Source: Hemiscyllium ocellatum (Eukaryota). Taken from it: a DNA stretch of 64,000 nt. Below the pieces are notes generated by a model. That model saw nothing but the letters and a program-made list of their open reading frames with translations, searched no databases and was not told where the DNA came from. The DNA is taken from positions 43,152,498 through 43,216,497 of the forward strand of contig NC_083435.1 in the NCBI RefSeq assembly GCF_020745735.1. Direction: 5' to 3'. The translations under genes and the position numbers were made by a program. Shown piece by piece: positions 1,780 to 54,400 of this stretch; the stretch's first letter is position 1, and the number at the start of each line of letters is the position of its first letter.

Positions 1780-2680
1780 ATAACCAGCTCCCAACACAAC
1801 ACAGAACTCAAAAAAAGAAAATCAGTAACAATCCTCACTCTGCACCTCCCAGGTTATGACACCTCACCCGCTTATATTCATGAATGGACCACCAACAAAA
1901 CTCAGCCTGGAAATCAGAGAGAAATGCTTCCAATAAACACATTCAATATCCAATACACAGCTCCAGTCACACAGTTCAGCACAAAGCACCGAGTAAACAG
2001 CTCTCTCAGCTGGATCTTCTCACACAGCATAAGGGACATTTCCACCCCTGATTACCCACAGGATAGTCAGACTGCCTGAAGATTGGTGTGGATATTATGG
2101 GATACAATTTGTATAAAAGCTGCCCCTTCACTCACCATCTCCTCACTTGGGTTTCAGTCCCTATAGGAAGTGAACCAGCTCTGGAAGAGGAAGAGGAGAC
2201 AATGAGCAGAGTGGGTGGGCTCTCTGATTGACGTCTCTCACAGTCAATCCAAATATTTCTGGAGAAACATGAGTTTCCTGAAACTTGGGAAACTGACCGG
2301 CGAAGTGTAGGTGACTTTGAGCAGCAGATCAGGTGGGGATTTAAACTTGTCACAGTCCCATCTGAATAAAACCTCACTTATTGCAGCTGCTGTCTCAGTT
2401 CGTCTGGAAAATGTTTGACAGAGATTTCTAATGTGAGAATAGATTAAAAATCACACAATACCGGGTTATAGTACACAGATTTACTTGGAAACACTAGTTT
2501 ACGGAACGCTGTTTCTTCATCAGGTCGTTGAAAAATAGCATTCTTCATCCTCTTAGGTTTTGAAACTGAACAGTGCGGGATGAGTATATTTGGATGTGTT
2601 TCACAGCAAATCAGAAGAGGAAATCCCACAGCATCCACGGCTGCATTGACGTGCAGTGGTGGGAATCAGCAAATACGCAG
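1780..2680 (-). repeat. ZNF leader module copy A, with candidate micro-exons 2136-2180 (45 nt) and 1868-1906 (39 nt)
   Basis: ctcttcctcttccAG|agctggttc...gaggagATG|GTgagt and ctctgatttccAG|gctgag...agcgg|GTgagg. The module recurs eight times in the window. Confidence 0.7.
2443..2533 (-). mobile_element. Penelope-like terminal-repeat fragment with degenerate hammerhead
   Basis: Matches the repeats at 32454 and 52840; flanked by AATAG direct repeat; absent from module copy B. Confidence 0.65.
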
Positions 2681-2984
2681 GAAGGATAGGCAGAGGTGGG
2701 AGGGACACTGGAGGGAGAGGGTCATAGGGAATAGGAGCAATTTAGACTCCTCTCTACCTCTCCTCCACCCTTTTATATCTTGCCTTCTTCTCTGACCTAA
2801 CTTGGTTCCTTTCTTTCTCTGAGCTCATCCTGTTTCCGCCCTTTGACCTTCATCCTCTTCTTGTCCTGCATTTAACAGATGTGAGGGATAGAAAGTTTTA
2901 GGCTCTTATCATAAATTTTAAAAATCAAAGTAGAAATTCTATAAAACATTGTTGAAAATAATAATGTCTTTATGACTATGCTAT

Positions 2985-3300
2985 CTTGTTTTATTCACTC
3001 ATGGTACATGGGCACTGCTGGCTGGGTCAGCATTTACTGCCCATCTTAGTTGCCCTTCAGAAGCTGTCGGTAAGCTGCTGCATGAACTGCTGCAGTCCAT
3101 GCGCTGTCGGTAGCTGCACAATGTTGTTCAGAAGGGAATTTTATGATTCTGACCCAGTGACAGTGAAAGGATATTTCCAAGTCTGGATGGGAAGTGGCTT
3201 GAAGGGGAACGTGCAAGTTGTGTTGTTCCCATGAATCTGCTACCCTCGTCCATCGAGATGGAAGTGGTTGTGGATTTATAAGGTACTGTCTCAGAATATT
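2985..3300 (-). mobile_element. LINE (CR1/L2-group) 3' end fragment
   Basis: Reverse complement ends in the same tail as the SINEs at 32672-33000 and 43750-44090. Confidence 0.5.
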
Positions 3301-3603
3301 CAAATGGTTAATTATTTCTCCTGTTCATGTAGCATAACTGAAATATACTAATATCTGTCAGCCTGTAGTTTGCTGAAAAGTAAATGTTGGGCATGTATGT
3401 TGCAGTCATGAATATGACTGACTCTTAGTGCATGAATACCCAAAATACCCAACTGTAATATGAAGAGTCACCTCAAACAGGTACAATCAGCAGGAACTCA
3501 CCACTTCCACTATTTCATCTGGGGCTGCGGTCACTTCTGACATTAGTACCAGCTTCCTGACTTATGTTTAATAAACCAGTATCAAAGATCACAAATGTTC
3601 AAC

Positions 3604-3707
3604 TTACACTCGATGTAACTTACACTTAAAATGCCAATTTCAATTACAGTCAATTTTACACTTGATGTAACTGACAACTAAAATGCCAATTTCGATTCCA
3701 GTTAATT
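3604..3707. repeat. Two-copy 52-bp tandem repeat
   Basis: ttacactYgatgtaact...aaaatgccaatttc repeated with period 52. Confidence 0.8.
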
Positions 3708-4022: not shown

Positions 4023-4025
4023 CAC

Positions 4026-4545: not shown

Positions 4546-7500
4546 TTGTAGAGTCATACAGCAGTGGAACAGGGTCCTTGGCCCACCATGTCTATTCCAA
4601 TCAATAAACACAAAAGTACACTAATCCCATTTACCTGGAATTACTCTATAGCCTACTGTGCCCTAGCATTTTAAGTGCTCATCCAGATGATTCTTAAATT
4701 TGCAAGAGTACTTGCTTCCACTATCCCCTCCGGCAAGCATCCTGTGTGCCTTTTCCACCATTCTGTTGACCTGTGTTGACATCTTCAGGGACTTCTACAC
4801 CAAGATTTCTTTATTCCTCAGTACTGCCAAAGGATGGGCCAATGGGCTGAGGAGTGGCAGATAGAGATTAATTTAGATAAATGTGAGGTGCTACATTTTG
4901 GAAAAGCAAATCAGATCAGGACTTACAAACTTAATGGTAAGGTCCTCGAGAGTGTTGCTGAACAAAGAGACCTTGGGGTGTAGGTTCATAGCTCCTTGAA
5001 AGTGGAGTTGCAGGGAGATAGGATAGTGAAGAAGGCATTTGGTATGCTTTCCTTTATTGGGCAGAGTGTTTTGAGAATGGAGTTGGGAAGTCATGCTGCG
5101 CCTCTACAGGACATTGGTTAGGCCATTTTTGGTCTCCCTCCTATCGGAAGGATGTTGTGAGATTTGAAAGCGTTCAGATAAGATTCACTGTACAAGGAAT
5201 TTGCTACGGGTTGCAGGATTTTAGCTATTGTGAGAGGCTGAATAGGCTGGGGCTGTTTTCCCTAGAATGTTGGAGGCTGAGGGGCATGGATAGGGTAACT
5301 AGACAAAGTCTTTTCCTTGGGGTGGGGGAGTGCAGAATTAGCTGGCATAGGTTTAGGGTGAGAGGGAAAGATATAAAAGGGACCCAAGGGACAACCTTTT
5401 CATGCAGAAGGTGGTCCGTGTATGGAGTGAACTACCAGACGACGTAGTAGGGGCTGGTACAATAACAACATTTAAAAGGCATCTGGATGGGTATATGAAT
5501 AGGAAGGGTTTAGATGGATATGGGCCAAGTGCTGGCAAATGGGACTAGATTAGGTTAGGATACCCGGTCGGCATGGACAAATTGGGCCGAAGGGTCTGTT
5601 TCCGTACTATGACTCTATGACCTACCTTATGTGATGTGTATCCTTCCCTTATTTGACCTTCCAAAATGTATCACCCCACACTTGCCGGGATGAAATTCTA
5701 TCTGCCATAGTTCTGCTCAATTTACCAGCTCATCAGTATCAGCATGTAGCCTGAGACCATCCTCTTCACAGTCAACAACATCATCATGTCATCTGCAAAC
5801 TCACTAATTATACCTTCTAATCACACATCAAAGGCATTGATGTACATAACAAACAGTAAGGGTCCATCACTGAATCCTGTGGTACACCACTAACAGATGG
5901 TAACAGGCTTCGAACTCCAAAAGCAACCCACCAGCATCACCCTTTGCCTCCAATTTGTAAGCCAATTTTGGATCCAGTTTTTCAACTTGTCTTGGTTCCC
6001 ATGGGCTTTTACCTTTTGGGATGTGGGATGTCTTCTATGTGGGATTTTGTTAGAGACCTGACTGAAGTCCATGTAAACTACATTAACTACACCACCCTCA
6101 TCAATATATTTAATCACCTTTTCAAAAGACTCAATTAACTGAGTCTGGCAGGATCTCCCTTGAACAAATCCCTGCTGGCTATCGCTGATCACTCTCTGCC
6201 TTTCCAAGCATTGGTTAATGTTGTCCTTTAGAATTTTTTCCGATAATTTCCCTTCCACTGGTCTGTAGTTACCTGGCATTTCCCTGCTGCCCTTCTTGAA
6301 CAAAATTGCCACGTTAAATATCCTCCAGTCACCACCTCTGGCCAACAAAGTATTAAATATCTCCACTAAAGAACCAGGTTCTCCTCCCTTGACTTCCATT
6401 GCAGCCGAGGAGATATCTCATCAGCCCCTGGGGATTTATGCTCACTAAAATATCCCAATCCTCTTCCTTATTAATCTTAACATGTTCCAGAACGACCTCA
6501 CTATCTCAATTGAAATCTCAGCTACAATCTACAGAGGAGAAGAATTAATTTAAACATCACCCAAATCCCCTGGCTCCACGTGATCTCCAATAGTTTCCAC
6601 TCTTTCACTGGTCATCCTCTTACTCTTAATATACTTCCAAAGAGCCTTGGGGCAGTTCTTGATCTCATCTGCCAAAGGTATTTCGTGGCCCTTCTTTGCT
6701 TTCCTAATTTCTTTTCTCAGAAGCTCTTACATTCTCTGTACTTTTGAAGGGCCTCTCCTGTTTTTAATGTGCTGTACCTGATGTATGCTTCCTTCGTTTT
6801 CTTTATCAAACTCTTGAAATCCCTTGACATCCGGGGTTATTATTGCTCTTGCCCTCAAGAGAAACACACTGATTCTATTTTTCACAGGCTCCCACTTTCC
6901 AAATGTAGACTTACCTGCAAGTGGCTAGTGCCAGTCTATGTTTGCTAAATACCGTCTAAGGCGATTGAAATCAACCTATCCCCCAATTTAGACAGTTAAC
7001 TTCTGCACTATCTTTATCCCTTTTCCTAACGGATGTGAAACTTACAGAAATGATTGCAAATTGAAACTTCAACTTGACTTCAATTAGGTTGAGCACCGTC
7101 TCATCTCTAGCAGGACTACTTGCACAAAAATATCTCCTGGATGCACTTCAAAAATTCCACCCACCTATTCATTTCACAATAAGGTGATCCCATTTAATGT
7201 TAGCAGAGTTTACGTCCCCTTCAACTGTAACCCTGTTCCTCTCACACCTTTCTGTTATTTGCCTAAGTTTCTGCTCCTCAATCCCCCCCGACTGTTATGA
7301 TTCCTCTCGTATAATCACAATAAGGTAATCATAGTCTTTTATTTCAAAGCTCTATCCATATGACAACATTTGAAAACCCATCTGGGATGTCCTCCCTCAT
7401 TACTGCGGTGATGGCTTCCTTTACCAATAATGCAATACCCCTATCTTTCTTACTTCCTACTGTTACATGGAAACATCTATACCTTGGAATGTTGAACTGC

Positions 7501-7935
7501 AAATCTTATCCTTCTTTCAACCACATCTCAATGATTGCAACAATGTCATATTCCCATTGCTGATCAATGCTCCAAGTTCATCTGCCTGACCAGTCAACTC
7601 GTTGCATTAAAATTGATACAATTTTGCTTTGTAGACTTCCCACTTGCCTTATCCAGCCCACGTCATGTCTGCCTACTGCACTGTCCTTGGTTCCTTGAAC
7701 CTAACTTTACATCTATTCTATTCCCCCTCCCCCCGTCAGACCAGTTTAAAACCTCCCAAATAGCAAACCTCCCATCAAAGACATCGGATCCATTCTGCTT
7801 CAGGTGCGACTTGTCCAGCTTGTACAGGTACCACCTATCCTATAAGCTGCCTTAATAATCTAATAATCTAATGTCCTTCCTTCTACATCATCCATTTTAG
7901 TCACACGCTTGTTTGATCTAATTCTATACTCAGTG
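4546..7935 (-). mobile_element. Degenerate CR1 LINE (endonuclease and RT to 3' end), split by a nested CR1
   Basis: ORF 5890-6399: LFKKGSREMPGNYRPV, QQGFVQGRSCQTQL, VVYMDFSQV, which are CR1 ORF2 motifs. Confidence 0.8.
4832..5601 (+). mobile_element. CR1 LINE 3' end nested in the older CR1
   Basis: KCEVLHFGKAN, RLNRLGLFSLE; terminal (tatgactc)n tail. Confidence 0.85.
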
Positions 7936-8604: not shown

Positions 8605-9975
8605 TCAAAACTTGCCACACCCCTAGCCAAGCTGTTCCACTACAGCTGCAACATTAACCTGCCAGTGTAAAAAATCGTTCAGGTATGACAGGAATTCAAA
8701 AGCAGGGTAAACCCAACCCAGTCAATACTGCAGTGTCAATCTACTCTTGATCATGAGTAAAGTGTTGGAAGGGATCATCAACATTGTGATCAAGCAGCAC
8801 CTGTTGGGTTTTACCATGTCTACTGAGCTCTTGACCTAATTAGAGACTTGGTTCAAACATGGATTAAAGAGCTGAATTCCAGAAGTGAGGTGACAAAATA
8901 CACAGATACCTTGATAGAGTGGAATTGGAGATGTTGCTGCAAGTAAGAGAGACTAGGATCAGATGACAAAGCCTCAGAGTGAAGGGACAACACTTTAGAA
9001 CTGAGAAGGGGAGGAATTTCTTCAGCCACAGGGTGGCAAATCTGTGGGACTCATTGCCAAGTCATTTAGTGTCCTTAAGACAGAGTTAGCTAAGTTCTTG
9101 ATTCGTAAGGGGATTAAGAATGATGAGGATAGGGAAGGAAAATGGGGCTGAGAAACAATTCAGTGATGGTCAGATGGTGGCGCAGACTCAATGGACCAAA
9201 TGACTTAATTCTTCTTCTATATCTTATAGTCTAATGGAGAGTGATAGCGCTTGACATCAAGGCTGCATTTCGTTGAAAGTGACATCAAGGAATACTAGCA
9301 AAACTGAAATCAATGGGAATCGGGGAAAACGCTGCACTGGTTGGAGTTATACCAAGCACAAAGGAAGATGGTTGTGGTTGTTTGACATCAGTCATCTCAG
9401 CACCAGGTCATATCTGAAGGGGTTCCCTAGGGTGGTGTCCTCGACCCAACCATCTTCAGCTGCTTCATCAATGACATTCCCTCCATCATAAGGTCAGAAA
9501 TCGTTCACCAATAATTGCATAACATTCAGCACCATTTGTGACTCCTCAGTTACTGAACCAGTGCAAATCCAAATGAAAGAACACCTTGACAGTATCCAGG
9601 TTTCAGCTGAAAAATGGCAAGTAATAGTCATGCCATGTAACTGCCAGGTAATGACAATTTCCAATAATATACAACCTACCCAAAAAGCTTTGACATTCAA
9701 TGATGTTACCATCAGTGAATTCCTCCATTATCAACAAACTGGGATTATCCTTGATCAGAAATTCAACTTGACTTGCCATACAAACACAGTGCCTGCAAGA
9801 GCAGGTCAGAGGCAAGGAACACTTCCCCAAAGCCTATTCATCATCTACAGGGCTTAAGTCAGGAGTGAAATGCAATGTTCCCCATTTGCCTGGGTGTGTT
9901 CAGCTCCAACAACAATAAAAAAGCTTGATAGCATTCAGGACAAAGCAGCCAGCTTTACTGGCAACACATCCATAA
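8605..9975 (+). mobile_element. CR1/L2-group LINE RT fragment, with a nested CR1 3' end at about 8895-9235
   Basis: ALDIKAAF, GVP*GGVLDPTIFSCFINDIPSIIRSE, HLDSIQVSAEKWQV. Confidence 0.7.
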
Positions 9976-10287
9976 TTTAATGACTTTGTTGTTGGTGGGG
10001 TCCAGTGCCAGCATCAACACTGTCAGTAGCATAATGGCAACACGGCCACATCCACTTGTTGGGCCACAGCGAGAGTCGAGACTCCAATGTTAGAGCTGGC
10101 TCTGAACCCGAGTGTAGATAGACTTCTCTTTATGCTCGATCTTTTCATTTTTGTCTTAAACTACCAAAATGGTGTGATGAAAGCTTTTCACTGTATTCTG
10201 TTGTATTTCACACAGCATAAAATATGTGACAATAAATCATTCAAATCAAATTTTATATAATGGAATACAATTTGTATAAAACTGCTT

Positions 10288-10407
10288 GCCTATGGCCATA
10301 CTCATCTGAAAATGTCCAATCTTGACTGAGCTTGGAAGCTCAGAAAACTCAAGACCTGGTTAGTACTTGGATGGCAGACTGCTGGGAATACCAAGTACAG
10401 AAGGCTT
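10288..10407 (+). pseudogene. 5S rRNA-derived sequence (SINE head or pseudogene)
   Basis: gcctatggccatac...ggaagctcag...cctggttagtacttggatggcagactgctgggaatacc...aggctt. Full 5S length with many substitutions. Confidence 0.9.
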
Positions 10408-10528
10408 AAGGGCTCTTGGGTCATAGTTTCTGCCTCCGAGCCAGGAGATTCTGGTTCAAGTCCCACTCGCTCCAGAGGTGTCTAGTTATATCCCTGAACA
10501 AGTTGAATAGAAAAGTAGGTTTAAAAAA
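10288..10528 (+). mobile_element. Chimeric 5S+tRNA-headed SINE-like insertion
   Basis: 5S is followed directly by a tRNA-like segment with B-box GGTTCAAGTCC and an A-rich end; the whole block is absent from module A. Confidence 0.6.
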
Positions 10529-11679
10529 CAGCTGCTGTTTCCTTGGCTTTTCAGTCCCTGTAGGAAATGAACTAGCTATGAGGAGGAGAGAATGTCTGAT
10601 TGAGGTGTCTCACAGCCAATCCAAACATTTTTGGTGCAACATGAGTTTCCCGAAGCTTGGGAAACTGATTAGTGAAATTGAAATGACTTTGAGCGGCAGA
10701 TCAGGTGGGGATTTAAACTTGTCATTGTCCTGTCTGTATATCTCACTTATTGCAGCTGCAGTTCCCCTAGTAAATGTTTGACAGAGATTTCTAGTGTGGG
10801 AATAGCATTATTCATGATCAGAGGCTTTCGAACTAACATCACTGTGAGATGTGTGTCCTTGGATGTGTTTGACAGCAGAAGAGGAAAACCCACAGCTTCT
10901 AAGGGAGCAATGACAATCAGGAGTGGGATCAACATATGCACAGGACAGCAGCACACAGGATTGAGGTTTACAGGAATTGGAGGCATATGAGAGATGAAAT
11001 TGACATTTCATCACTGATGTGGGGAGTGAGAGGGTCTCATTGTGTAGGTTCGTGACTAATTAGCCAATATTTTACAGGTTTGCCCTGCCCCGGGAGCATT
11101 GCCTGTGGGGGTGCATGAAATGGTGACATCTGCAACAGAAGTCATGGGCAGAGCCTTTCTCCAATCGACTGAGCATCAGCTCCATCACCTTCCAGAATAC
11201 GGGTGTGGTGTCTGAGTTCCTCACAATGAAAACATTGTGGGATGATCCACTGTGAGTGGGTTCACATGGAGTATTCTCAGATGGCCATTACACACGACTT
11301 GAATAAGGGGAATTGCTTTCTGTTCAGGGATATCTGTTGATCCCATTGGGTGACCTTCAAAATCATGAGTGTGAGTAGTCAACTCCAGCACTTGGCGAAG
11401 CAGCTATTCCATAAAACCCCACTGAGCGCTGCTAATGCTTAGTGTTGTATTCCATTTAACGAAGTCATTTGTGGTGAGAGTAATTTACTCTGCCCCCTCC
11501 TCCAGATTTATAAAGACAGAAAGAATATTAACCATTTTAAAATCAATCTTCAATGTAACAGCAAACCCAAAACTCATTGCAATATTGACATTATCATGTT
11601 CTTCTGACTATATACACAACTATTTTAACTGTTTCTCTTGTTGTTATGACAGAATTGAAATGCTGAACACTTGAACGGG

Positions 11680-14269: not shown

Positions 14270-15058
14270 GAGGAGATGAAACAATCCGGACACATATCAC
14301 AGTGGAAGAGTTCATCTTCTGTGTGGGTTCACAGATATTTCAGGAGCTCCAATAACAGTGTGAATGCACTAGTACAGGAATCACACAGAAAGGATTTCTC
14401 CTGTGTGAGGGTGCTTATGGACCAGGAAATACACTGACAGAACAAAAACATTGCATCTGAAGAAATTGTCCTGATTCATAAATTGTTTAATACATCTTTG
14501 GAAGGTTGATCACAAATTAACTTTTGAAGGGTTAATCCCAAGTGTGGACACTTTGATGGAGCAGGACGTTCCAGGATCTTGACAATGATTACTTACACAC
14601 TTCACACTTGAATGGTTTCTGCCTGCGTGAAAACGCCAGTGATTACAGCGAGTCGAACTTAACACTGATTTGATACGTGCATCACAACTAATTGGTTTCT
14701 TTCTTGTGAACACATTGAGGGTTGTAAAGACTCGACGATTTCAAGAATGATTTGTAAGACAACTTGCAAAAGACTCGTTTCTCTCAAGTGTGAATCTTGG
14801 ATTGTCTCAATGCAGTGGGGAATGATATGTAACACACCTCACACTCGAACAATTTCTGTCATGTGTGAATGCGGTGGTGTATGTAGAGATGTCCTGACCA
14901 CAAGACTGGTTTGTTACACACCTCAAACCTGAATGCATTCTCTTCTGTAAGGACCCTCTGATGCTGCAGCTGTCTTGCTAAGGTGGGGAATGATTTTTCA
15001 CACTTGCTTTCTCCCATTTGTAAGACAGAAGAACTGGCATGAGCTGCAGAATGATATG
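14270..15058 (-). pseudogene. Decayed zinc-finger repeats downstream of the ZNF-2 stop (3' UTR region)
   Basis: CEKSFPTLARQLQHQRVLTEENAFRFEVCNKPVLWSGHLYIHHRIHT*, THTEDELFHCDMCPDCF, with stops and frameshifts. Confidence 0.75.
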
Positions 15059-16906
15059 TCACAAACCGTTCACTTTCTTTCCATTGTGGATACGTTGGTG
15101 TACACGGAGGCTCCCTAATTGTGAATATGATTTGTGACACATCTCACATTGGAATGGTTTCTCTCCTTTGTGGACACGTTGGTGTGTGTGGAGGGCTCGT
15201 GCCTCTGAGAACAAATTGTCACACATCAGGCACTTAAACAATTTCTCCTCTGTTTGAATATGTCTATGTAAGCAGAAGTTTCCTGACTGCGAAAATGATT
15301 TGTTACATACCTGACAGTGGAATGGTTTCTTTCGTGTGTGAATACGTTGGTGTGTGTGGAGGTTTGATAATGATGAGAATGATTTATTGCATTGCTCGCA
15401 TGTGAATGGTTTCTCCCCTGTATGAATCCTCTGATGGAGCATGAGTTTCAGTGAAGTGGGGAATAATCTGTCACATACCTCACACTTAACCAATTTGTCT
15501 CCTGTGTGAATGCGATGATGTATGTGGAGTTCTCTTGACTGTGAGAATAATTCTGAGTTGTGTGATAAATCAAACAGTTTATCTCTTCTGTGGATGCGTT
15601 GGTGTGTGCGGAGGTCTCCTGCTTGTGAGAACAATTTGTCACATACCGTACACTTAAACAATTTATCTCCTGTGTGGATAAGTTGGTGTTTACGGAGGTA
15701 TCCTGACTGCGTGAATGATTTGTCACACACCTGACAGTGGAAAGGTTTCTCCCCTGTGTGGACACGCTGGTGTGTGTGCAAGTTTGATGATGATGAGAAC
15801 GATTTGTCACACACTTCACATCGGAATGGTTTTTCCCCTGTGTGAATCCTCTGATGGAGCAGGAGTCTTGATGAAGTGGGGAATGATTTATCACACACCT
15901 CACACTTAAATAAACCACCTCCCCTATGAAGACGTTGGTGCGTGTGGAGCTGGCCTGACTGTGAGAATGACTTGTCACAGATGTCGCACCTAAATATTTT
16001 CTCTGCTGTGTGGATGCGTTGGTGTGTACGGAGGGCTCCTGCTTGTGAGAATGATTGGTTGCACAGCCTACACTGAAACAATTTCTCCCCTGTGTGAATA
16101 CGTTGGTGTATGCGGAGGTTTCCTGACTGTGTGAATGATTTGTCACACACCTCACACCGGAAAGGTTTCTCCCCTGTGTGAATCCTTTGATGAAGCAGGA
16201 GTCTTAGTGAAGTGAGGAATGATTTGTCACATACCTCACACTTGAACAATTTCTCTCCCGTGTGAATACGTTGATGTGTGCGGAGGTATCCTGCCTGAGA
16301 GAATGATTTGTTACACACCTCACAGTGGAAGGGTTTCTCTCCTGTGTGAACACGTTGGTGTGTGTGGAGGTTCGACGATGAGTAGAATGCTTTGTCACAC
16401 AATTCACATCTGAATGGTTTCTCCCCAGTGTGAATCATCTGATGGAGCAGGAGTCTTGAAGAAGTTGGGAATGATTTGTCACACACCTCACACTTGAACA
16501 ATTTCTCTCCTGTGTGAATACTTCTGTGTACATGGAGATGTTCTGACCGTAAGAATGATTTGTCACACACCTCACACCTGAATGGTTTCTCTCCAGTGTG
16601 AATCCTCTGATGGAGCAGGAGTCTTGATGAAATGGAGAATGATTTATCACACACCTCGCATTTGAACAATTTCTCTCCTGTGTGAATACGACGGTGTACG
16701 CGGAGCTGTCCTGACTGAGAGAATGATTTGTCACACACCTCACAACGGAATGGTTTCTCCCCTGTGTGAACACGTCGGTGTATGTGGAGTTTCGACGATA
16801 GCGCGAATGATTTATCACATTGCCTGCACATGAATGGCTTTTCCTCTGTGTGAATGTGGTGGGACATGAGGAGGGTTGATGATGATGAGAATGATTTATT
16901 GCACAT
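15059..16906 (-). CDS. C2H2 zinc-finger array protein (ZNF-2), 615 aa, 22 finger units (19 canonical)
   Basis: True ATG at 16906; uninterrupted CxxC...HxxxH repeats with TGEKP/L linkers; no effector domain in the ORF. Confidence 0.9.
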   Translation of the reverse strand: MCNKSFSSSSTLLMSHHIHTEEKPFMCRQCDKSFALSSKLHIHRRVHTGEKPFRCEVCDKSFSQSGQLRVHRRIHTGEKLFKCEVCDKSFSISSRLLLHQRIHTGEKPFRCEVCDKSFLRSEHLHVHRSIHTGEKLFKCEVCDKSFPTSSRLLLHQMIHTGEKPFRCELCDKAFYSSSNLHTHQRVHTGEKPFHCEVCNKSFSQAGYLRTHQRIHTGEKLFKCEVCDKSFLTSLRLLLHQRIHTGEKPFRCEVCDKSFTQSGNLRIHQRIHTGEKLFQCRLCNQSFSQAGALRTHQRIHTAEKIFRCDICDKSFSQSGQLHTHQRLHRGGGLFKCEVCDKSFPTSSRLLLHQRIHTGEKPFRCEVCDKSFSSSSNLHTHQRVHTGEKPFHCQVCDKSFTQSGYLRKHQLIHTGDKLFKCTVCDKLFSQAGDLRTHQRIHRRDKLFDLSHNSELFSQSRELHIHHRIHTGDKLVKCEVCDRLFPTSLKLMLHQRIHTGEKPFTCEQCNKSFSSLSNLHTHQRIHTRKKPFHCQVCNKSFSQSGNFCLHRHIQTEEKLFKCLMCDNLFSEARALHTHQRVHKGEKPFQCEMCHKSYSQLGSLRVHQRIHNGKKVNGL

Positions 16907-29008: not shown

Positions 29009-29130
29009 TGAGGGGATGAGTGAGACCAAGATGGATGAAATCTCCGGTATGATGCTTGCGAATTTCGGGGGTGATGCTTAAAAGAAAAATGCAGATGATA
29101 ACAAATGGTAATTAAAGAAAAAGGGGAAAT

Positions 29131-34114: not shown

Positions 34115-34370
34115 CAGTCTGACTCTCCTGTGGGCAGTCAGGGATGGGAATGGCCCTTACTCTGTGTGAGAAGATCCAGTTGAGAGAGCTGTTTACTCTG
34201 TGCTTTGTACTGAACTGTTAGACTGGAGCTGTGTTGGATATTGAGTGTGCTTATTGGAAGTATTTCCCTTTTGATTTCCAGGCTGAGTTTGTTGATGGCT
34301 CATTTCTGAATATGAGAAGGTGAAATGCAGAGTGTCTGAGGATTCTTACTGATTTCCTGTTGTTGAGCTC
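34115..34370 (+). repeat. ZNF leader module copy D (partial; 38-nt micro-exon 34282-34319)
   Basis: Reverse-complement homolog of 1820-2075; tttccAG|gctgag...gagaag|GTgaaa. Confidence 0.7.
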
Positions 34371-39287: not shown

Positions 39288-39702
39288 TGCAGTGATTATA
39301 ACGGGGTCAGCCAGGGGGACCTCTGAGAATAGGAGTTAATTTGGTCCAATCGGATAGCTCCAGCTGACAGATAAGAACAATAAAGTCCTGCACACACACA
39401 CAACATGGGTGTTGGGGAGAAAATAAGCACTACCGCTGTGTAAAAAAAAAACAGAAAGGTCACATCTGCACACACAACATGGGTGCTGGGGAAAAAAATA
39501 AGCACTACCGCAGTTAGGCGGTAGTGAGGGGGAGGGAAAAAACAAAAAAAAAGACATTCTAATGCAAAAAAAACAGAAAAGTCAAACATCCTGTTCACTC
39601 TGAGAACTGGCTTTTGCGAAGCTGGTCAAGGGTCAAGGGTTCTCCATGTGTAAATAAAAGTTGACTTTTTAATAGGATACTGACATCTGTGGAGTTATTT
39701 CA
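39288..39702 (+). mobile_element. Solo LTR with a nested insert carrying a duplicated motif of about 45 bp
   Basis: TG...CA ends, TSD TGGAC/TGGAT, AATAAA near the 3' end; absent from other module copies. Confidence 0.7.
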
Positions 39703-39736
39703 TGGATACTATGGGATACCATTTGTATAAAAGCTG

Positions 39737-40104
39737 TACAAGATAATACATAGCTTGGAAAGGGTGGAAGCTAGGAAATTGTTTCCGTTAGGCGAGGAGA
39801 CTAGGACCCGTGGACACAGCCTCAGAATTAAGAGGTGGTCAATTCAGAACAGAAATGCGGAGACATTTCTTCAGCCAGAGAGTGGTGGGCCTGTGGAATT
39901 CATTGCCACAGAGTGCAGTGGAGGCCGGGACGCTAAATGTCTTCAAGGCCGAGATTGATAGATTCTTGTTGTCTCGAGGAATTAAGGGCTACGGGGAGAA
40001 CGCTGGTAAGTGGAGTTGAAATGCCCATCAGCCATGATTGAATGGCGGAGTGGACTCGATGGGCCGAATGGCCTTACTTCCACTCATATGTCTTATGGTC
40101 TTAT
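39737..40104 (+). mobile_element. CR1 3' end
   Basis: LFPLGEETRTRGHSLRI, FSQRVVGLWNSLPQ; (tcttatgg)n tail. Confidence 0.85.
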
Positions 40105-40789
40105 GCTCCTTCACTTACCATCTCTTCACTTGTTTTCAGCCCCACCAGGAAGTAAACCAGCTCCAGAAGAAGAGAGAATGGGCAGAGTGGGTGGGCTCTC
40201 TGATTGATGTCTCTCTCAGCCAACTTTTTTATTATTTCAAAAATATATTTTATTCATAAATTTTATCTGTAAGTACAGGCAAAATGTCCTAAAACAGTTC
40301 TGCTCAGACTTTACAGAGAAAATAAAAAACAAGCAACACATTATTAAAATTTGACATTCTTCAGAGCTTCCTTGCATTTGCAAAACAAAGGCATTTTTCT
40401 ACTCACGCAGGAAACTATTTACATTCATTTTGAGGCTACAGGGGGCTCTTACAACTGACCAGGCCCTCATTATACTTTGGCAGAAAGACCTCAGAAGGTG
40501 GGCTTTACCTACTGTGCCTGTAGCTTTGGAAACTGACCAGCAGATTGAATTTTAATGGGGTGTTCAGACTTTTAATTGGTTGAGATATATGTCAAGTGTT
40601 CATCGTTGTTTATCTGGAACGAGAATCTATATTTTTTGTAATAAACAGTAGTTCTGGTATAATACAGAAAGCCGGTACATGCCTTTGGCTAACCTGGGTC
40701 TAAAATGATTTGTAAATTGGGGAATTCTATGTTCTTTGATAAAATCTTTCACGTTTGTGACAATTCTGGGAAAAGTGGGGCTTGATGTC

Positions 40790-41500: not shown

Positions 41501-42739
41501 AATAAAAACAGCAAAATGTTGGAGAAACTCAGTAGTCAGGCAGTTTATGTGTGGAGAGAGAAAAACACAGCTATTGCTCCAAGTCCAGTATAACTTTTCT
41601 GAACAAGTAATCATCAGAGCAGTCATAACCTTTCCTGAACTGGGCTCCATCTCATTATTTGTCGAAGTCTGTTTCCCAGACAGTGGATTGTGACATAAAA
41701 GTCAGTGATACAGGAGTGTGAATGATAGAGGCGGATAAGTCTTGATCTAGATCTGGGTGAGAGATACCTGGGTTAATCTGACACTCTAGGAACTTTACTT
41801 TTTATTTAAATGTGCGGTGTCTTCTCTGTGAGTGTTTGATAAAAGAATGTCAATGTGGAGAAGTTATTCTACCTGTATTCTCATTTTAAAATAGGCAAAC
41901 TTACATCTTTAAGATCACATCCAAATGTTTCTTTTTAATTTTGATGAGGGCTTTTGCATCAATATCCTTTCAGACACTGAGTTCCAAACTTTCATGACCT
42001 TTTGGCCAAAATAATTTCTCCTCAACTGCCCTCCAATCAATGACTTCAAATATTCTGCTTCCTGTTGATAGAACTCTCTGCTCAGGGAAATAAGATTGAA
42101 CAATTCTCTGCCACTGCCACTTTCCTCCCTGCCAATGAACTCACATGGACAAAATTCTGTCAATGTTTCCCCCACCCTCGCCCTGAACTCTGGCCTTTCT
42201 TTTGTTTCTGTCCTATGTCCTGTCATGCCCTCTCTGAGTTCATCTTGCCCATGAGATCCACCTCCTGTTCCCTTGACCTGATTCTCAATAAACAGCTGAT
42301 CACCCACTTTCATTGCTGACTCTCATGTTTACCAAGATTATTCATGGATTCTCTTACTTCAGATGTGTCCTCTCTCCTTTAAATTTAACACCCTTGTCCT
42401 CTCGACCCCTTTGTTATTGCAAACAACCGTCTCATCTTTAACTTCTTCAAATTCTTGGAATAAGTTGTTGCCATGTAAATTATAGACAGGGTCTTGAGTC
42501 ATGTGAAGTATGAGGGGGAGGGCAAGGGGTGCAGTATCTGACAAGGGGAGAGTGATCGACAGAGTGATCTGGTGAGGAGTGGATTTATCTCCAAGTCACT
42601 TACTCAGTCAAAGTCAATCTTCAAGTTGAAGAGGGTCTTTCAGAACAGGTTATCCTCTGAGCACAGAGTAATTCCTGTCTTTTTCGTGTGCAACTCCTCT
42701 CTGTGCATATACTGATCCCATCACTGCAGATCAATACTG

Positions 42740-43060
42740 CCTTGGATGCTGAGGATCTTCCTCTTTTGAACTACTGTCAAACACAATTGAGTGATACTTC
42801 CCACAATGGTGTCATCAGTTTGAAAGCCACCAAGGATGAAGAATGCTATTCACACAAGAATTTTATGTAATTTACCACAGGAGCTGAAACACCAACTGCA
42901 ATAAGTGAGGTTTTATTCAGATGGGATAATGACAAGCTTAAATCTCCACCAGATCTGCTGCTCAAAGTCACCTCCATTTCACTGGTCAGTTTCCCAAGTT
43001 TCAGGGAACTCACATTACTCCAGAAACAAATGGACTGGCTGTGAGAGGTGTTAATCCCTG
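42740..43060 (+). repeat. ZNF leader module copy F (upstream half only)
   Basis: ctgcaataagtgaggttttattcagatggga...gatctgctgctcaaagtcacc matches the reverse complement of 2230-2400. Confidence 0.75.
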
Positions 43061-44090: not shown

Positions 44091-44674
44091 GACCACACTC
44101 TCCCCATACTCAGGTTCCTAGTCCTCCCAGTCAGGAAAGTACAAACATTGCCCATGGTATTGGCCAAACACCTGTCACCTGAAGAAGATCTGTCTATAAT
44201 TCACATAACCAACTAAAGGTCTGATTTTATGTCATACCCATTCCTCTAAGAGTTGCCTCATTTTACAAGCACAGAGACCACAACTAAACTTGGAGCCAAG
44301 ATGTTCAGCAGTGCGTTTAGGAAGTGTCCGGAAGGCAGGTAGTGCAGGGCCCTGAACGTATCTCACTCTTCAACCATCATTGAGCTCTGAATCCTGATGA
44401 AAGTGATGGGTAATCGAGGGAGTCCATGGTACCACAGCTGGCTCAGCTGTACAGGAAGGTCCACTGAAAATGGGAAGAGCAATCATTATCACAGATTCAA
44501 TGGTTCTGGGAACACACAAATATAACTGAAGAAGCAATTCCAGGATGATAAATTACCTCGCTGGTGCCAGGGTCAGCGATGTGACTGAATGACTGCTAAT
44601 GCCAGTACAGGGATTTTTTAGAAGAAAGTGATAACTTCATCACAGGGGTTAGATTGGCTGTGCACAAAGGCAAC

Positions 44675-45600
44675 ATAGAACTGTACAGTGCAGGAATGGG
44701 CCCTTTGGCCCATAATGTTGTACCGAACATGACTCCAAATTAAACTAATCACTTCTGCCTGCCTTTGCTTCATTTCTCTCCATACCTCTCTTGCATATTC
44801 ATGTGCTTATCTAAAAATCTCTTAAACATCCCTTATTGTGTCTGGCTTCTTCATCACCCCGAGCAGCGCAATCCACAATCCTACCAATCTATGTTAAAAA
44901 ACTTGCCCCTCACACCTCCTTTGAACTTTCCCCCTCTCACCCGAAATACATGCCCTCTAGTATTAGATATTTCAACTCTGGGAAGAATATTCTAACGATC
45001 AACCCCATCTATGCGTCTCATAATTTTATAGACTTCGACCAAGTCTCACCTCAGCCTCCGCTGCTCCAGAGAAAACAACCTAAGTTTTTCTAGCATCTCC
45101 TTGTAGTTTCTACTCTAATGCAGGCAGATCCTGGTCAACCTCTTCTGCACCCTCTCCAAAGCTCTACATCCTTCCTGTAATGTGATGACCAGAAGTTAAT
45201 ATAGTACTGTTAAGTGTGGCCTAACCAAGTGTTACAAAGCTGCAACATGACATCCTGACTCTTTACTCAGTTTCCTGACCAATAAAGGTAAGCATGCCAT
45301 CTGCCTTCTTTACCACACTATCTATTTCTGTGACTACTGTCAAGGAGATATGGACTTGAACCACAAGATCCCTCTGTACATCAATGCTGTTTAGAGTCCT
45401 GCCATTAACTGTATAACTTTCTTTAACATTTGATCCCCCAACATGCAGCACCTCACACTTATTTGGATTAAACTCCATTTACCGTTTCTCCACCCATATC
45501 TGCAACTGATCGAGATTCTGCTGTATCCTTTGTCAAACTTTGACACTATGCACAACTACACCAATCTTTGTATCATTTGGAACCTTACTAACCCACCCTT
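44675..45600 (-). mobile_element. CR1 3' end
   Basis: MEFNPNKCEVLHVGGSN...QRDLVVQVH; similar to 18310-19220. Confidence 0.8.
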
Positions 45601-46098: not shown

Positions 46099-47211
46099 TC
46101 ACTTAATGGGATTCCCCCCTGTGTGGATTATCCGGTGTCGCAGAAGGCTCGATGACTGTGTGAATGCTCGGTCACACATCTCACACTTGAAAGGCCTTTC
46201 ACCTGTGTGGATTGTTTGATGTTGTATTAGGTGTGATGACTGCGTGAAGGCTAGGTCACAAATCTCACATCTGAAGGGTTTCTCGCCTGTGTGAATTCGT
46301 TGGTGTCTATGGAGGTTCGTTAACTTTGAAAATGATTTGTCACATATCTCACAGATGAAGGGTTTCTCCCCTGTATGAATGCGCTGGTGAGCACGGAGGC
46401 TTGATGATTGCGAGAATGATTTATCGCACTCCTCACATGTGAACGGTTTTTCACCAGTGTGAGTGCGTTGGTGCCTTGCCAGGTCTGACGATCTTCCAAA
46501 GCCCTCACAACACAACACACACTTAAAAGGTTTCTCCCCTGTGTGAATCCTTTCATGTGTTAGGAGATCAGACGATTGAACAAAAGCCATCATACAAACC
46601 TTACACTTGAAGGGCTTTTCCCCTGTGTGAAACCTCTGGTGTGTCAGCAACCTTGTAGATGTTGCAAAAGCTTTATCACAAAGCTCACATTTGAATGGTT
46701 TCTCCCCTGTGTGGATTGTTCGATGAACTTGGAGGTGCGATAACTGTGTAAAGGCTTTGTTGCACACCTTGCACGTGAATGACTTTTCCCCTGTGTGAAT
46801 TTGTTGGTGTACACGGAGGTTTGTTAACTGTGAGAATGATTTGTCACACTCAGGGCACGTGAATGGTTTCTCTCCGGTGTGAATGCGTTGGTGAGTGCGG
46901 AGGTTCCACGACCGTAAGAATGACTTGGCGCAGACTTCACATTCAAAGGATTTCTGGACAGTGTGAATATGTTGACATTGCACCAGATCCGATAATCGTC
47001 CAAAACTCTCACTCCGCACTTCACTTTTGAAGTCTTTCTCCCTTGTGTGGATTGTCTGATGTACTAGAAGATTGGATAACTGTGTGAAGGCTTTGTCACA
47101 TATGCCACACGTGAATGACTTCTCCCCTGCATGAATGCACTTGTGAGCATGCAGGTTCACTGACTGTGAGAATGATTTGGAACACACCTCACATTTGAAG
47201 GGCTCCTCCAT
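46099..47211 (-). CDS. C2H2 zinc-finger array protein (ZNF-3), 370 aa from first ATG, 13 units (12 canonical)
   Basis: The track start 47265 is GTG; the first ATG is 47211 (acaATGG, strong Kozak context); MEEPFKCEVC...HRIIHTGGNPIK*. Confidence 0.85.
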   Translation of the reverse strand: MEEPFKCEVCSKSFSQSVNLHAHKCIHAGEKSFTCGICDKAFTQLSNLLVHQTIHTREKDFKSEVRSESFGRLSDLVQCQHIHTVQKSFECEVCAKSFLRSWNLRTHQRIHTGEKPFTCPECDKSFSQLTNLRVHQQIHTGEKSFTCKVCNKAFTQLSHLQVHRTIHTGEKPFKCELCDKAFATSTRLLTHQRFHTGEKPFKCKVCMMAFVQSSDLLTHERIHTGEKPFKCVLCCEGFGRSSDLARHQRTHTGEKPFTCEECDKSFSQSSSLRAHQRIHTGEKPFICEICDKSFSKLTNLHRHQRIHTGEKPFRCEICDLAFTQSSHLIQHQTIHTGERPFKCEMCDRAFTQSSSLLRHRIIHTGGNPIK

Positions 47212-47930
47212 TGTGTGAATTGTCTGGTGTGTCAGAAAATTGAAAAATTGGATACAGGCCAGCACACAAACCTCATCCAGAGAGTTGTTATCCCATATGA
47301 AACGTCTGGTGGTGCATCAGGAAGTTTGCAAGTGTTCAGAAAGCTTCATCACAAACCTCACATTTGAAGAGTGTCTCTCCTTTGTGGGTTATCTAATGGG
47401 CCAGGAGCCTTGACGACAGTGAAACGGATTGGCATGCAGCTTACATGTTGAGCAACTTCTCCCCTGTTTGAATTTGTTGGGGTATTCAGAAGTATTTTAA
47501 TTATGAGATTGCTTTGTCAGACACCCACACATGAATGACTACTCACATCTGTGAATATGTTGGTATCTGTTGAGGGTCAATAACTTCCAAAAATGATTTG
47601 TCACACATCTCAAACCGAATAGCTTTTTCACCAATGTGGATACACTTGTTTCTCAGGATTGTTAGTGACTGTGTGAAGTCCTGGTCACACACTCCACTGC
47701 AAACAGTTTCAATGCCACATGGCTCTTCAGAGTTGAAGCCTGCATGTTATGAGATCTTATGAAACTGTGGAGTCCTCTTCACAAAACTCACACTCGAGCA
47801 GCTCTTCATCTGTAGGAGTGAATCAGTGGTTCATGAGACCCAATGAATGACTGAAGCAGTCACCATACTTGAAGCCCATTCATGTATTTCCTCAGCTTCA
47901 TCTTCTCTGTGTTGAGCAATACAGTTAAAG
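47212..47930 (-). pseudogene. Decayed fingers upstream of the ZNF-3 start
   Basis: Repeats of roughly 84-bp period such as GETLFKCEVCDEAF and IGEKAIRFEMCDKSF, with stops. Confidence 0.7.
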
Positions 47931-51059: not shown

Positions 51060-51610
51060 GTCATAGAGATGTACAGCACAAAAACAGACCCTTTGGTCTA
51101 ACACGTCCACGCCAACTACACATCCAAATTCAATCTACTCTCATTTGCCAGCACTTGGCCTATATCTTTCTAAATTTGTCCTATTCATACACCCAGTCAC
51201 ATGTTTTTTAAATGTTGAAATTGTTCCAGCCTCCACCATTTCCTCTGGCAGCTCATTCCATATATGCACCACCCTTTGATTCAAAAGTTTGCCCCTTAGT
51301 CCCCTTTAAATCTTTCCCCTCTCACCCCAAAACTAGTGTAGTGCTGGACTCCCCCACCTCAGGGAAAAGACCTTGTCTATTTACCCTATTCATGCCCCTC
51401 ATGTTTTTATAAACCTCTATAGTGTCACCCCATAGCCTCTGAGACTCTAATGAAAACAGCCCCAGGCTATTCAGTCTCTCCCTATAGTTCAAATCTTCCA
51501 AACTTGACACTGTCCTTGTGAACCTTTCAAGTTTGACAACCTCCTTCCCATAAGAGGGAGACCAAAGCTGCATACAATATTCCAAAAGTGGCTGAACCAA
51601 TGTCCTATGT
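51060..51610 (-). mobile_element. CR1 3' end
   Basis: RTLVQPLLEYCMQLWSP...LGLFSLE. Confidence 0.8.
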
Positions 51611-52539
51611 CGGCTTGTATTGCTTCCATGGGAACAAGCTGGGACTTGCTGAGTGAGGTGCAGAGTTATAACATCTGAGCACAGGCTGACAGAAGATTTT
51701 CTGACTCTGAAATTATGCACAGAGAGGGAGAAAACCATGGACTGCAGCCTGTGTGGTCAGCAGAGAGGAGAAGATGTCATTTCTGTGCACTGCCATATAG
51801 TATGTCAGAAGGAACATGGTTTCTAGTTGAATAGTTACAATATGACAATCTAAAGACTTTGGAAAATTCATTTTTGGTGGGTCAGAGATTGGTATTGGTA
51901 GATAGTTCAGATTTCTCTGGAAATTCAGAGAAATAGCTTCTGATGGCCACTTACAGTTATGTTTCTGTGAAAAAGAGAAATGTGACCCAGTTGAAAGCTA
52001 ATGGTGACGTTGGATTTGTCCCTGTAAAAATTATGATTCAGCAAACAAATATGATTATGGTAAAGACTGTTGGTCATATTACAAGTTAAAAGGAGTTATC
52101 GTTTCTGTCGTTTAATGTTCACTTGCCAACAAGGTTGTGGTTAGTTAATGTTATTTTAAGTTCATTTACTTACTGAGTACCTGTCAATCGGAAATCCTTC
52201 ACGCATTACCTTTAAGTGGGTCACTGGGAATTCAAATAAATTATCAATGATCAATGTCAAGAGAGACTACAACAGTTTCTCAGTCAATAACCACAAACAA
52301 AATCATCTTGTCATTGCAGTATGTGGGCGTTTGCTGTGATGACATTGGTCACTATTAAAACATTACGACAGTGACCACATTTCAACACCACGCCATTGGT
52401 AGCTGGGACATCCAGTGATTGTGAAAGATTCCACATAAATTCAAGTCTGTCCTTTTCTCTTTTTCGAGAACGTTATGAGAGAAGGTTGTTAGAGATCTTG
52501 AACAGCTTTGAAAAGTACATCGGAAGGGACATAAAATGA

Positions 52540-53690
52540 ACATACTCAATATCCAACACACAGCTCCAGTCAAACAGTTCAGCACAAAGCACCGAGTAAA
52601 CAGCTCTCTCAGCTGGATCTTCTCACACAGCATAAGGGACATTTCCACCCCTGATTACCCACAGGATAGTCAGACTGCCTGAAGATTAGTGTGGATATTA
52701 TGGGATACAATTTGTATAAAAGCTGCTCCTTCACTCACCATCTCCTCACTTGGTTTTCAGTCCCTATAGGAAGTGAACCAGCTCTGGAAGAGGAAGAGGA
52801 GACAATGGGCAGAGTGGGTGGACTCTCTGATTGACGTCTGATTTGGAGATGCCGGTGTTGAACTGGGGTGGACAAAGTTAAAAATCACACAACACCAGGT
52901 TATAGTGTAACAGGTTTATTTAGAAGAACTAGGTTTCGGAGCGCCGTTCCGTCATCAGGTGATTGTGGAGTAAGGTCATGATCACAGAATTGAGAGCCAA
53001 AGGAGTCCAGTGTCATGGCGATGTGATACATTAACCAATGTTGGATCAACTCTTCCATCTTTTATGAATTGGATATGCTGGTTCCAGTTCTTTGATATGT
53101 AAATCCCAGAACATCTTTTAAACTACATTCTCAAGACAGCTCAGCTTTTCTCACAAAAGGTGTGAAGTCTGTCTGTGTCCCGATGTTGAGACAGACTGTC
53201 AAGTCCTGTGCATTGTTTTACAGAGTTTTTCATGGATTCGTCCAGTTTTTGAGCAAAATAAGATGTAATTCTGCAAAACTGCGCGAATCCATGGAAAACT
53301 GTAAAACTATGCAGCGGACTTGTCAATCAGACCCAACATCCGGATCCAGACTTCACACCTTTTGTTCGGAAAACCGAGCTATTTTAAGAATGTAATCTAA
53401 ACAAGTTCTGGGATTTACATATCAAAGAATAGGAACCAGCATGTCCCATTCTAAAAAAATGAAAGAAATAATCTAAAATTGTTTAATGTATCATATCTCC
53501 ATAACACTGGACTCCTTTGGCTATCAATTCCATGATCATAATCTTACTCCACAACCACCTGACGAAGGAGCGGCGCTCCGAAAGCCATTGCTTCCAAATA
53601 AAACTGTTGGATTATAATCTGGTGTTGTGTGATTTTTGACAAATATTTTTGGAGCAGCATGAGTTTCCTGACACTTGGGAAGCCGGTAGA
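52540..53690 (-). repeat. ZNF leader module copy G (micro-exon 52739-52783), interrupted by a fold-back PLE
   Basis: Near-identical to module A over about 290 bp. Confidence 0.8.
52840..53640. mobile_element. About 800-bp fold-back Penelope-like insertion with two degenerate hammerheads
   Basis: 52880-53250 is the reverse complement of about 53285-53638; CTGATGA...GAAA (minus, about 52934-59) and CTGACGA a GGAGC ggc GCTCC GAAA (53559-83). Confidence 0.8.
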
Positions 53691-53869
53691 ATTGAGGTTC
53701 TTCCATATTACTTGACAATAAATTCCCACTTGACTCCCCAAATCAGCCGGTTGCATTGTTAATGTCATCTTTCTGGTCACACTCTTTCATTTCTGTGCCC
53801 ATCCCCACGATATCCCTCTCTTTAGTTCCCCTTCACTTGTCCATTTCTTGATCCTACAACTGCATGTTG

Positions 53870-54400
53870 CTTCTGCTCCTGCAATACGTGAAATTTTATT
53901 CGGATGAGACAATGGCAAGTTTAAATCCCCAACTGATCTGCTGGTCAAAGGTCCCTATTTCCCCCGTCAGTTTCCCAAGTTGCAGGAAACTCGTGTTGCT
54001 CCAGAAATATTTGGATTGACTGTGAGCGACATCAATCAGAGAGCTCGTCCATTCTGCCTATTGTCTCCTCTTCCTCTTCCAGAGCTGGTTCACTTTCTAC
54101 AAGGACTGAAAACCAAGTGAGGAGATGGTGAGTGAAGAAGCAGCTTTTATGTAAATTGTATCCCATGATGTCAACACCAATCTTCAGGCAGCCTGACTAT
54201 CCTGTGGGCAGTCAGGGGTGGAAATGTCCCTTATGCTGTGTGAGAAGATCCAGCTGAGAGAGCTGTTTACTTGATGCTTTGTGTTGGATTGTGATTGATA
54301 TGTTGGATAATGTGTGATTATTGGAAGCATTTCCCTTCTAAAATGCAGGCTGAGTTTTCTTAATGGCTCATTCCTGAATATGAGAAGGTGAGGTGTAATT
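53870..54400 (+). repeat. ZNF leader module copy H (micro-exons 54083-54127 and 54349-54387)
   Basis: ttcctcttccAG|...ggagATG|GTgagt; aatgcAG|gctgag...gagaag|GTgagg. Confidence 0.75.

Follow-up and report, generated by a model that had tools for sequence, protein, structure and literature searches.

In a 64,000-nucleotide (nt) stretch of the genome of the shark Hemiscyllium ocellatum (contig NC_083435.1, positions 43,152,498 to 43,216,497 of the forward strand), a repeat unit recurs among genes and gene relics for C2H2 zinc-finger (ZNF) proteins. We refer to the whole stretch as the window and number it from its first letter. The unit is real, gene-linked, and non-coding, and it is not a new protein module or domain. 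We regard it as probably the non-coding 5′ end, made up of a promoter-proximal region and two short untranslated exons, of an old, shark-wide family of C2H2 ZNF genes that encode fingers only. A reading of the same sequence made earlier (the original prediction) had seen in the unit either a family-specific spliced leader or the relic of a lost N-terminal domain. The first half of that claim was partly supported, in that the unit is a gene-linked, non-coding 5′ part that is colinear in three other shark genomes; the domain relic was not supported.

Copies of the unit were sought by BLAST of positions 1501 to 2800 against the 64,000-nt window and with a repeat finder. All eight copies that had been predicted (A to H) were recovered where they had been placed (8 of 8 positions), with BLAST identities of 72 to 97% and E-values of 1e-16 to 1e-174, and a ninth fragment was found at 21575 to 21706. 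Recurrence of the unit was thereby confirmed. The idea of a single block was not, since an upstream block (U-block; 2259 to 2686 in copy A) and a core (1779 to 2258 in copy A) also occur apart, each without the other.

Copy A as a whole covers 1749 to 2686 on the minus strand (BLAST). Its U-block is common to copies B, F, and H, the ninth fragment, and the three foreign loci described below. Next on the same strand comes an exon-1-like block of 45 nt (2136 to 2180), which has a pyrimidine run and CAG in front of it and ends in ATG/GTGAGT. A 229-nt “intron 1” follows (1907 to 2135), the core of which (1945 to 2059) is the best-conserved part of the unit, and then an exon-2-like block of 39 nt (1868 to 1906) with the acceptor TTTCCAG and the donor GTGAGG. 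Both exon-like blocks sit where the original prediction had put them. The first, 45 to 46 nt long and ending in ATG/GT(G/A)AGT, was found in A, C, E, G, and H, all of which retain the ATG at its end; the second was found in A and H (39 nt) and in C and D (38 nt). Only A, C, and H hold both blocks together. Copies G and E end inside the intron and therefore lack the second block, and copy D begins inside the intron and therefore lacks the first. Splice sites had been described as intact in A, C, and G; we found this to be true of A and C, the second donor of C being GC rather than GT, and not of G, which has no second exon.

The unit is tied to finger exons. A scan for C2H2 motifs located finger arrays on the minus strand only, at 1 to 560, 14500 to 16906, and 46099 to 47265, together with a relic near 37282 to 37428. 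On the plus strand, downstream of copy D, there is a linker relic (35727 to 36075) from which the fingers have been lost. Upstream of all five of these exons or relics there is a copy of the unit in the same orientation (A, C, G, E, and D, respectively, for genes A, C, and G and the relics of E and D), as had been claimed for every finger exon with a visible upstream side.

In gene A, the leader part of the finger exon (565 to 988, minus strand) starts after a TTTTACAG acceptor, is closed in all three frames, and contains four upstream ATGs; the finger open reading frame (ORF), which starts MAEKPFKC (1 to 564, minus strand), extends past the left end of the window. The finger exon of gene C (15059 to 17532, minus strand) has its acceptor at 17532, a closed leader of about 0.63 kb, and an ATG at 16906 that opens a finger ORF of 615 codons. 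That of gene G (46099 to 47925, minus strand) contains a 388-codon ORF whose first ATG reads MEEPFKC. Its linker is truncated at about 47925, the exon is without the family acceptor and the first part of the linker, and copy G lies 4.6 kb away. In the gene of copy E, the finger-exon acceptor is destroyed and the fingers are decayed (37282 to 38192). The full layout is thus present in the window only in genes A and C. The acceptor TTTTACAG is intact in six of seven units and broken only in pseudogene E. Splice donors and acceptors are kept in the intact genes, with A and C complete (C with its GC donor), and the acceptor is lost in the pseudogene.

We then looked for relatives by a profile search of an alignment of linker pieces against 1.84 billion representative proteins. 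Its only true matches were three short annotated ORFs, GCC38039.1 from Chiloscyllium punctatum, XP_043534404.1 from Chiloscyllium plagiosum, and GCB81121.1 from Scyliorhinus torazame; the remaining matches were repetitive, unrelated proteins, and no protein joining linker to fingers was found among the 1.84 billion representatives. A word search with the linker piece found shared words with nothing. Word searches with the finger arrays returned a flood of generic ZNFs and missed even close shark proteins, and exact look-up of the bamboo-shark finger proteins gave the genome itself or nothing, with no transcript contigs. The three loci behind the profile matches are here called L001 (C. punctatum), L002 (C. 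plagiosum), and L004 (S. torazame).

Across these three genomes we found one colinear order, namely, U-block, core with exon 2, alignable intron 2, TTTTACAG acceptor, leader of about 0.45 kb, and fingers. The C. plagiosum locus contains a full copy of the unit (9439 to 10125) that is 90% identical to A and has ATG/GTGAGT and both exon-2 splice sites intact, and a second, 5′-truncated copy that lies directly upstream of an alignable intron 2, the linker, and a 400-codon finger ORF. At the C. punctatum locus, an assembly gap separates the U-block from the linker and a finger ORF of 594 codons. In S. torazame the U-block is followed by an assembly gap, the 3′ half of the core with an intact exon 2 (82 to 88% identical), intron 2 (72%), the linker, and fingers. 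Conservation falls from the core (86 to 93%) through the linker (71 to 78%) to intron 2 (at most 69%, with many gaps). In 5 of 5 cases in the window and in all three foreign loci, the unit lies ahead of the coding exon, always at the corresponding place and in the same direction. The ATG/GT at the end of exon 1 is retained in 6 of the 6 copies holding that block, which are A, C, E, G, H, and the minus-strand copy of L002. XP_043534404.1, a RefSeq model, uses exactly the family acceptor TTTTACAG; the plus-strand copy in L002, which has a broken donor, is not used by that model. The unit is thus kept in at least two shark orders, and if the gene model given below holds, its layout predates the split of carpet sharks and ground sharks.

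The finger ORFs have a start of their own. An ATG two to three codons before finger 1 is positionally conserved in A, G, and the three foreign loci, the ORFs opening with MAEKPFKC, MEEPFKC, MKEKSFNC, MEQKPFKC, and MEGKSFRC, and an in-frame stop lies 4 to 35 codons upstream of each. Since the finger ORF has this conserved ATG with an in-frame stop just upstream, the proteins are predicted to consist of fingers only and all of the upstream sequence to be leader. Between the fingers of A and G, which are 72% identical at the nucleotide level, the ratio of nonsynonymous to synonymous substitution rates (dN/dS) is 0.21 and the proportion of synonymous differences (pS) is 0.58. The fingers of both genes are under purifying selection, as the dN/dS value shows.

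Several observations indicate that the sequence ahead of the fingers is not coding. The conservation that had been ascribed to the “micro-exons” did not hold up, because in copies C, D, E, G, and H the intron core (1945 to 2059 in A) is 87 to 98% identical to that of A, versus 71 to 91% for the exon blocks. The length of exon 2 differs by one base between copies (38 or 39 nt), and four of seven copies (H, the two in L002, and L004) contain an in-frame TGA or TAA in it. When translation begins at the exon-1 ATG, the 39-nt form runs into a stop (shown as an asterisk) at codon 5 in H (MAEFS*), in both C. plagiosum copies, and in S. torazame (MAEFC*), the last on the assumption that the hidden catshark exon 1 also ends in ATG; the consensus likewise reads MAEFC*. 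Copies C and D, with 38 nt, are shifted in frame relative to the 39-nt form. The original prediction had found an upstream ORF (uORF) across the joined exons of copy A, and local translation reproduced its 27 residues as written. The length of this uORF is caused by a TGA-to-TGG change in copy A alone, and a meaningful peptide is not supported, given an ancestral in-frame stop after four codons and an exon 2 of 38 or 39 nt. The ancestral exon-1 uORF would read MAEFC*, with its stop after those four codons.

In A, C, E, and G, stops close all three frames of the leader between the acceptor and the fingers, which is 0.4 to 0.6 kb long, and a stop 13 codons past the acceptor is common to A (TAG), C (TAA), and C. 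plagiosum (TAG). One linker frame is open for 49 to 74 codons in A, C, D, and E, and a decayed finger (...ESFNHSSS.MNH) is visible in the leader; the region may therefore once have been coding, although not recently. Besides the exon-1 ATG, the leader region has four to five more ATGs, and a mini-uORF, MN(H/Y)*, is kept in A and in the three foreign loci. No copy has a continuous ORF from the exon-1 ATG into the fingers. Pfam recognized no domain in the open linker pieces at an E-value of 1 or below, and no KRAB or SCAN exon was found between the 5′ exons and the finger exon, the micro-exons being 38 to 46 nt long, with stops and 1-nt insertions or deletions (indels). A conserved peptide in frame with the fingers, as in the FiNZ family discussed below, was likewise absent, as judged from the length of exon 2, its stops, and the lack of a through-frame.

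We also considered two other candidates. A small structured RNA in the intron core was discarded because both tests for it were negative, there being no covariation and no Rfam family. An intron inside the leader, with a conserved CAGG/GTGAGG as its donor and an AG some 12 nt ahead of the main ATG as its acceptor, was worked out by hand and would not restore a frame from linker to fingers; it would at most be a candidate intron of the untranslated region.

Taken together, these features suggest the following gene model. Transcription would start at or just upstream of exon 1, which happens to end in ATG and would be followed by the 229-nt intron and a second untranslated exon of 38 to 39 nt. 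Splicing would join the two short exons to the finger exon at its conserved TTTTACAG acceptor, and the protein would be translated from the conserved ATG two or three codons before finger 1. In the mRNA, that ATG would be preceded by about 0.4 to 0.6 kb of sequence with a minimal uORF (MAEFC* in its ancestral form) and four to five further upstream ATGs. The cluster would have grown by tandem and inverted segmental duplication, after which copies would have been truncated by transposon insertions and deletions (B, D, E, and F), orphaned (B, F, and H), or overwritten by short-tract copying (G).

Evidence for such copying comes from a comparison of paralogues. Over a stretch of 305 nt, modules A and G share 96.7% identity, whereas their fingers are 72% identical and what remains of the G U-block is 81% identical to that of A. 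This difference points to recent short-tract copying of the core, with G presumably the recipient from an A-like copy. Copying, breakage, and partial homogenization of a 5′ cassette is a familiar pattern in multigene families.

Hints of a promoter were sought in the CpG observed/expected ratio (o/e), which averages 0.28 over the window. Copy C keeps its CpG, with an o/e of 0.87 in intron 1 and 0.89 in 17851 to 18150. Copies A, G, and H are at background (0.23 to 0.32), and D and F have no CpG at all. In C. plagiosum, the coding sequence (CDS) of XP_043534404.1 starts 89 nt upstream of the full copy's exon 1 and runs the other way, and this antisense start would fit a bidirectional promoter. 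The only true CpG island in the window lies at 30651 to 30983 (plus strand; o/e, about 0.95). It has an exon end, CAGATG/GTAAGT, 3.3 kb upstream of exon 2 of copy D, and may provide an alternative first exon for that exon 2 at 34282. Two ACTACA..CCCA-type motifs in the island are reminiscent of ZNF143/THAP11 sites. In L002, the region 21000 to 21300 (plus strand) is CpG-rich (o/e, about 0.8) and has an exon end, CCGCAG/GTAAGT, at 21277 in place of the module's exon 1; in the gene behind it, the donor of exon 2 has changed to AT. In two 5′-truncated copies, D in the window and one in L002, exon 2 is therefore preceded by another exon that is rich in CpG and ends in a consensus donor. Because of the CpG of copy C, the antisense CDS start, and these substitute CpG-rich exons, we favor the idea that exon 1 is an exchangeable first exon beside a possibly bidirectional promoter.

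Several observations sit uneasily with the proposal that the unit is the untranslated 5′ end of the gene family. The exon-like blocks are no better conserved than the intron, so their identity as exons depends on splice-like motifs alone. A leader with five to six upstream ATGs would be a poor template for scanning ribosomes. Most copies in the window are damaged or orphaned. The patch of copy A that retains CpG is in the U-block (o/e, 0.58) and not at exon 1. Finally, a perfect pyrimidine tract and CAG precede exon 1 in A, C, G, H, and L002, as they would an internal exon.

The alternative that fares best, although we consider it somewhat unlikely, keeps the anatomy of the original prediction: the 45-nt block would be an internal micro-exon whose acceptor is genuine, and the actual first exon, with the promoter, would lie upstream, either in the U-block (for example, ending at the conserved AATAA/GTGAGG near 2378) or far away. 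Conservation of the tract and CAG in A, C, G, H, and the C. plagiosum copy is what this alternative predicts, and it agrees with conservation of the U-block across species, with the CpG kept there in A, and with an annotated C. plagiosum gene of 576 residues on the minus strand that spans the whole module locus. However, copy C, which has no U-block (a fragment of a long interspersed nuclear element [LINE] starts at about 18310), nevertheless retains CpG over exon 1 and intron 1. Moreover, exon 1 has been swapped for other promoter-like first exons in 5′-truncated copies, which is typical behavior of a first exon, and the antisense RefSeq CDS begins just 89 nt upstream of it. The pyrimidine run itself is equally readable, presumably, as GGAA (ETS-type) cores on the other strand.

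A stronger version of the untranslated-5′-end proposal would explain the poor leader as deliberate. A bidirectional promoter and a purposely inefficient leader, in which two conserved mini-uORFs and a 5′ untranslated region of about 0.45 kb of decayed linker, retained from bamboo sharks to catsharks, throttle or gate translation of the fingers-only ZNF, would be combined with short-tract conversion that keeps the unit uniform while the paralogues otherwise diverge. We consider this combination unlikely, and regulation of translation by uORFs is a conjecture.

The unit could instead have no function now and be only what can still be aligned of a gene unit that was duplicated long ago, its splice-like motifs being inherited leftovers. 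The lack of extra conservation in the exons relative to the intron would be expected in that case, as would the background CpG of A, G, and H and the truncation or orphaning of six of the nine copies; module identity between A and C (78.6%) is also little above that of the closed-frame linker (72%). Three observations make this quite unlikely. The core is 82 to 90% identical across species and orders, versus 61 to 72%, with many gaps, for intron 2 of the same units; splice signals are retained in complete genes and lost in the pseudogene; and the 97% conversion tract is centered on the core.

In another reading, the micro-exons and linker would be the relic of an N-terminal region that was once translated from the exon-1 ATG and that decayed after translation moved to the finger-1 ATG. 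The exon-end ATG kept in all six copies with the block, the linker frame of 49 to 74 open codons found in A, C, D, and E, which matches the phase of a 39-nt exon 2, and the decayed finger in the leader of all four species are consistent with this history. On the other side, paralogues and species have in common both the in-frame stop of exon 2 (TGA or TAA) and the one that lies 13 codons into exon 3, so any coding phase would predate the split of bamboo sharks and catshark, and linker indels are not multiples of three. The relic of an N-terminal domain that the original prediction had allowed for in the micro-exons found no support either, since Pfam returned nothing, and the profile search of 1.84 billion proteins yielded no linker-plus-finger protein and only short ORF fragments of shark annotation. 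We regard this history as very improbable.

Finally, the unit could be a dispersed repeat, or a fragment of a transposon, that lies near finger arrays by chance. Four pieces in the window (B, F, H, and the fragment at 21575) are without a finger exon, the unit splits into separable blocks, A 2444 to 2530 recurs as small inverted-repeat pairs, and the 305-nt A/G block is far younger than the surrounding genes. Judged from the window and the three foreign loci, this reading is nevertheless highly unlikely: the module has no Rfam match, its orientation agrees with that of the finger exon in 5 of 5 cases, its order relative to homologous intron 2, linker, and finger sequences is the same in the three other genomes, and the flanks of G still hold older U-block homology (81%), which fits conversion better than insertion.

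The absence of KRAB from cartilaginous fishes has already been reported (PMC8455134) and is not new here. In tetrapod KRAB-ZNF genes, as in the shark genes, one or two short 5′ exons precede one large all-finger exon, the genes lie in tandem clusters, and the 5′ end is copied with each duplicate. The shark family differs in having no KRAB or SCAN exon and in that translation appears to start inside the finger exon. The closest described fish-specific ZNF front exon is FiNZ. The cyprinid FiNZ-ZNF genes are likewise a lineage-specific, KRAB-less expansion with a family-specific short exon upstream of the fingers (bioRxiv 10.1101/2022.11.29.518450), but in FiNZ that exon encodes a conserved peptide domain of 28 residues (bioRxiv 10.1101/2022.11.29.518450), whereas the short shark exons differ in length by a single base, contain in-frame stops, and encode no conserved peptide. 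As in the uORF leaders of eukaryotic mRNAs, the shark leader has a conserved upstream ATG and a very short ORF (MAEFC*, then MN(H/Y)*) before the main start; it differs in having no conserved uORF peptide and several further upstream ATGs that are not conserved.

If the gene model holds, it would give a clean description of a large effector-less shark ZNF family, with two untranslated exons, a long leader, and a start directly before finger 1. The finding reveals no new protein domain and no new kind of genetic element; it bears on how vertebrates without KRAB deploy poly-ZNF proteins, and it should help in the annotation of ZNF clusters in sharks, in which leader and finger ORFs are at present split into different products by automatic gene models.

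The C. plagiosum annotation is a case in point. On L002, the exons of XP_043534404.1 are at 10001 to 10066, 17254 to 17382, 22367 to 22405, and 22604 to 22728 (plus strand). The model starts antisense in the U-block, includes an exon antisense to a retroviral env-like region, and ends in the ZNF leader as a 115-residue ORF. Immediately after it comes the finger ORF of 400 codons, which is annotated as another product. The two are probably one mis-split ZNF gene.

The remaining copies in the window vary in completeness. Copy B (10255 to 10945, minus strand) consists of the U-block and half of exon 1; its ATG, donor, core, and exon 2 are gone, and no finger exon lies between it and copy A. Within it, at the exon 1 break, is a 5S-rRNA-like sequence (10288 to 10406, plus strand) that scored 38.3 bits, just at the Rfam gathering threshold, and is probably a 5S-derived short interspersed nuclear element (SINE) rather than a gene. 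Copy C (17819 to 18300, minus strand) has exon 1 at 18223 to 18178 and a 38-nt exon 2 with a GC donor at 17948 to 17911; it is without a U-block, the LINE fragment abutting at about 18310. The ninth fragment (minus strand; BLAST) is a piece of U-block. On the plus strand, copy D (34104 to 34412) comprises the 3′ half of the core and a 38-nt exon 2 (34282 to 34319), without exon 1, and copy F (42695 to 43056; BLAST) is U-block only. Copy E (39156 to 40223, minus strand) is split by two insertions into three pieces (39156 to 39286, 39703 to 39736, and 40104 to 40223). Its exon 1 (40160 to 40119) retains ATG/GTAAGT and has lost the preceding CAG, and exon 2 is absent.

Copies G and H stand head to head. 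Copy G (52535 to 52960, minus strand) has exon 1 (52783 to 52739) and core but no exon 2. Copy H (53879 to 54418, plus strand) has exon 1 at 54083 to 54127 and exon 2 at 54349 to 54387, where an in-frame TAA gives the MAEFS* reading; no finger exon lies downstream of it within the window. The spacer of about 1.1 kb between them is palindromic, with inverted arms at 52877 to 53118 and 53399 to 53640 that are 84% complementary. The part of the U-block that matches A 2444 to 2530 recurs as close inverted pairs at 32490 to 32549/32576 to 32619 and 52878 to 52960/53552 to 53637 and in L001 at 7307 to 7565. From its sequence, this part looks like a small hairpin or a repeat resembling miniature inverted-repeat transposable elements (MITEs) that was absorbed into the upstream block.

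Finger arrays show a CpG o/e of 0.8 to 0.9 at 251 to 550, 16651 to 16950, and 46701 to 47000, versus the background of 0.28. Either codon constraint (His-Gln-Arg codons) or copying between repeats probably accounts for this. LINE-like fragments at 18310 to 19214, upstream of module C, and 44672 to 45595, downstream of the gene G finger exon, are 76% alike and in direct orientation, and they may be part of an ancestral tandem duplication unit. A tandem array at 19862 to 19993 has a 34-nt unit, with three overlapping 64-nt copies that are 91 to 100% alike. Finally, an endogenous retrovirus (22650 to 29257) lies between the upstream region of gene C and the CpG island. Its flanking repeats (22650 to 22781 and 29126 to 29257) are 98% identical, and it contains Gag_p30 with a zinc knuckle (24067 to 24861) and a piece of reverse transcriptase (25490 to 26050) in fragmented ORFs.

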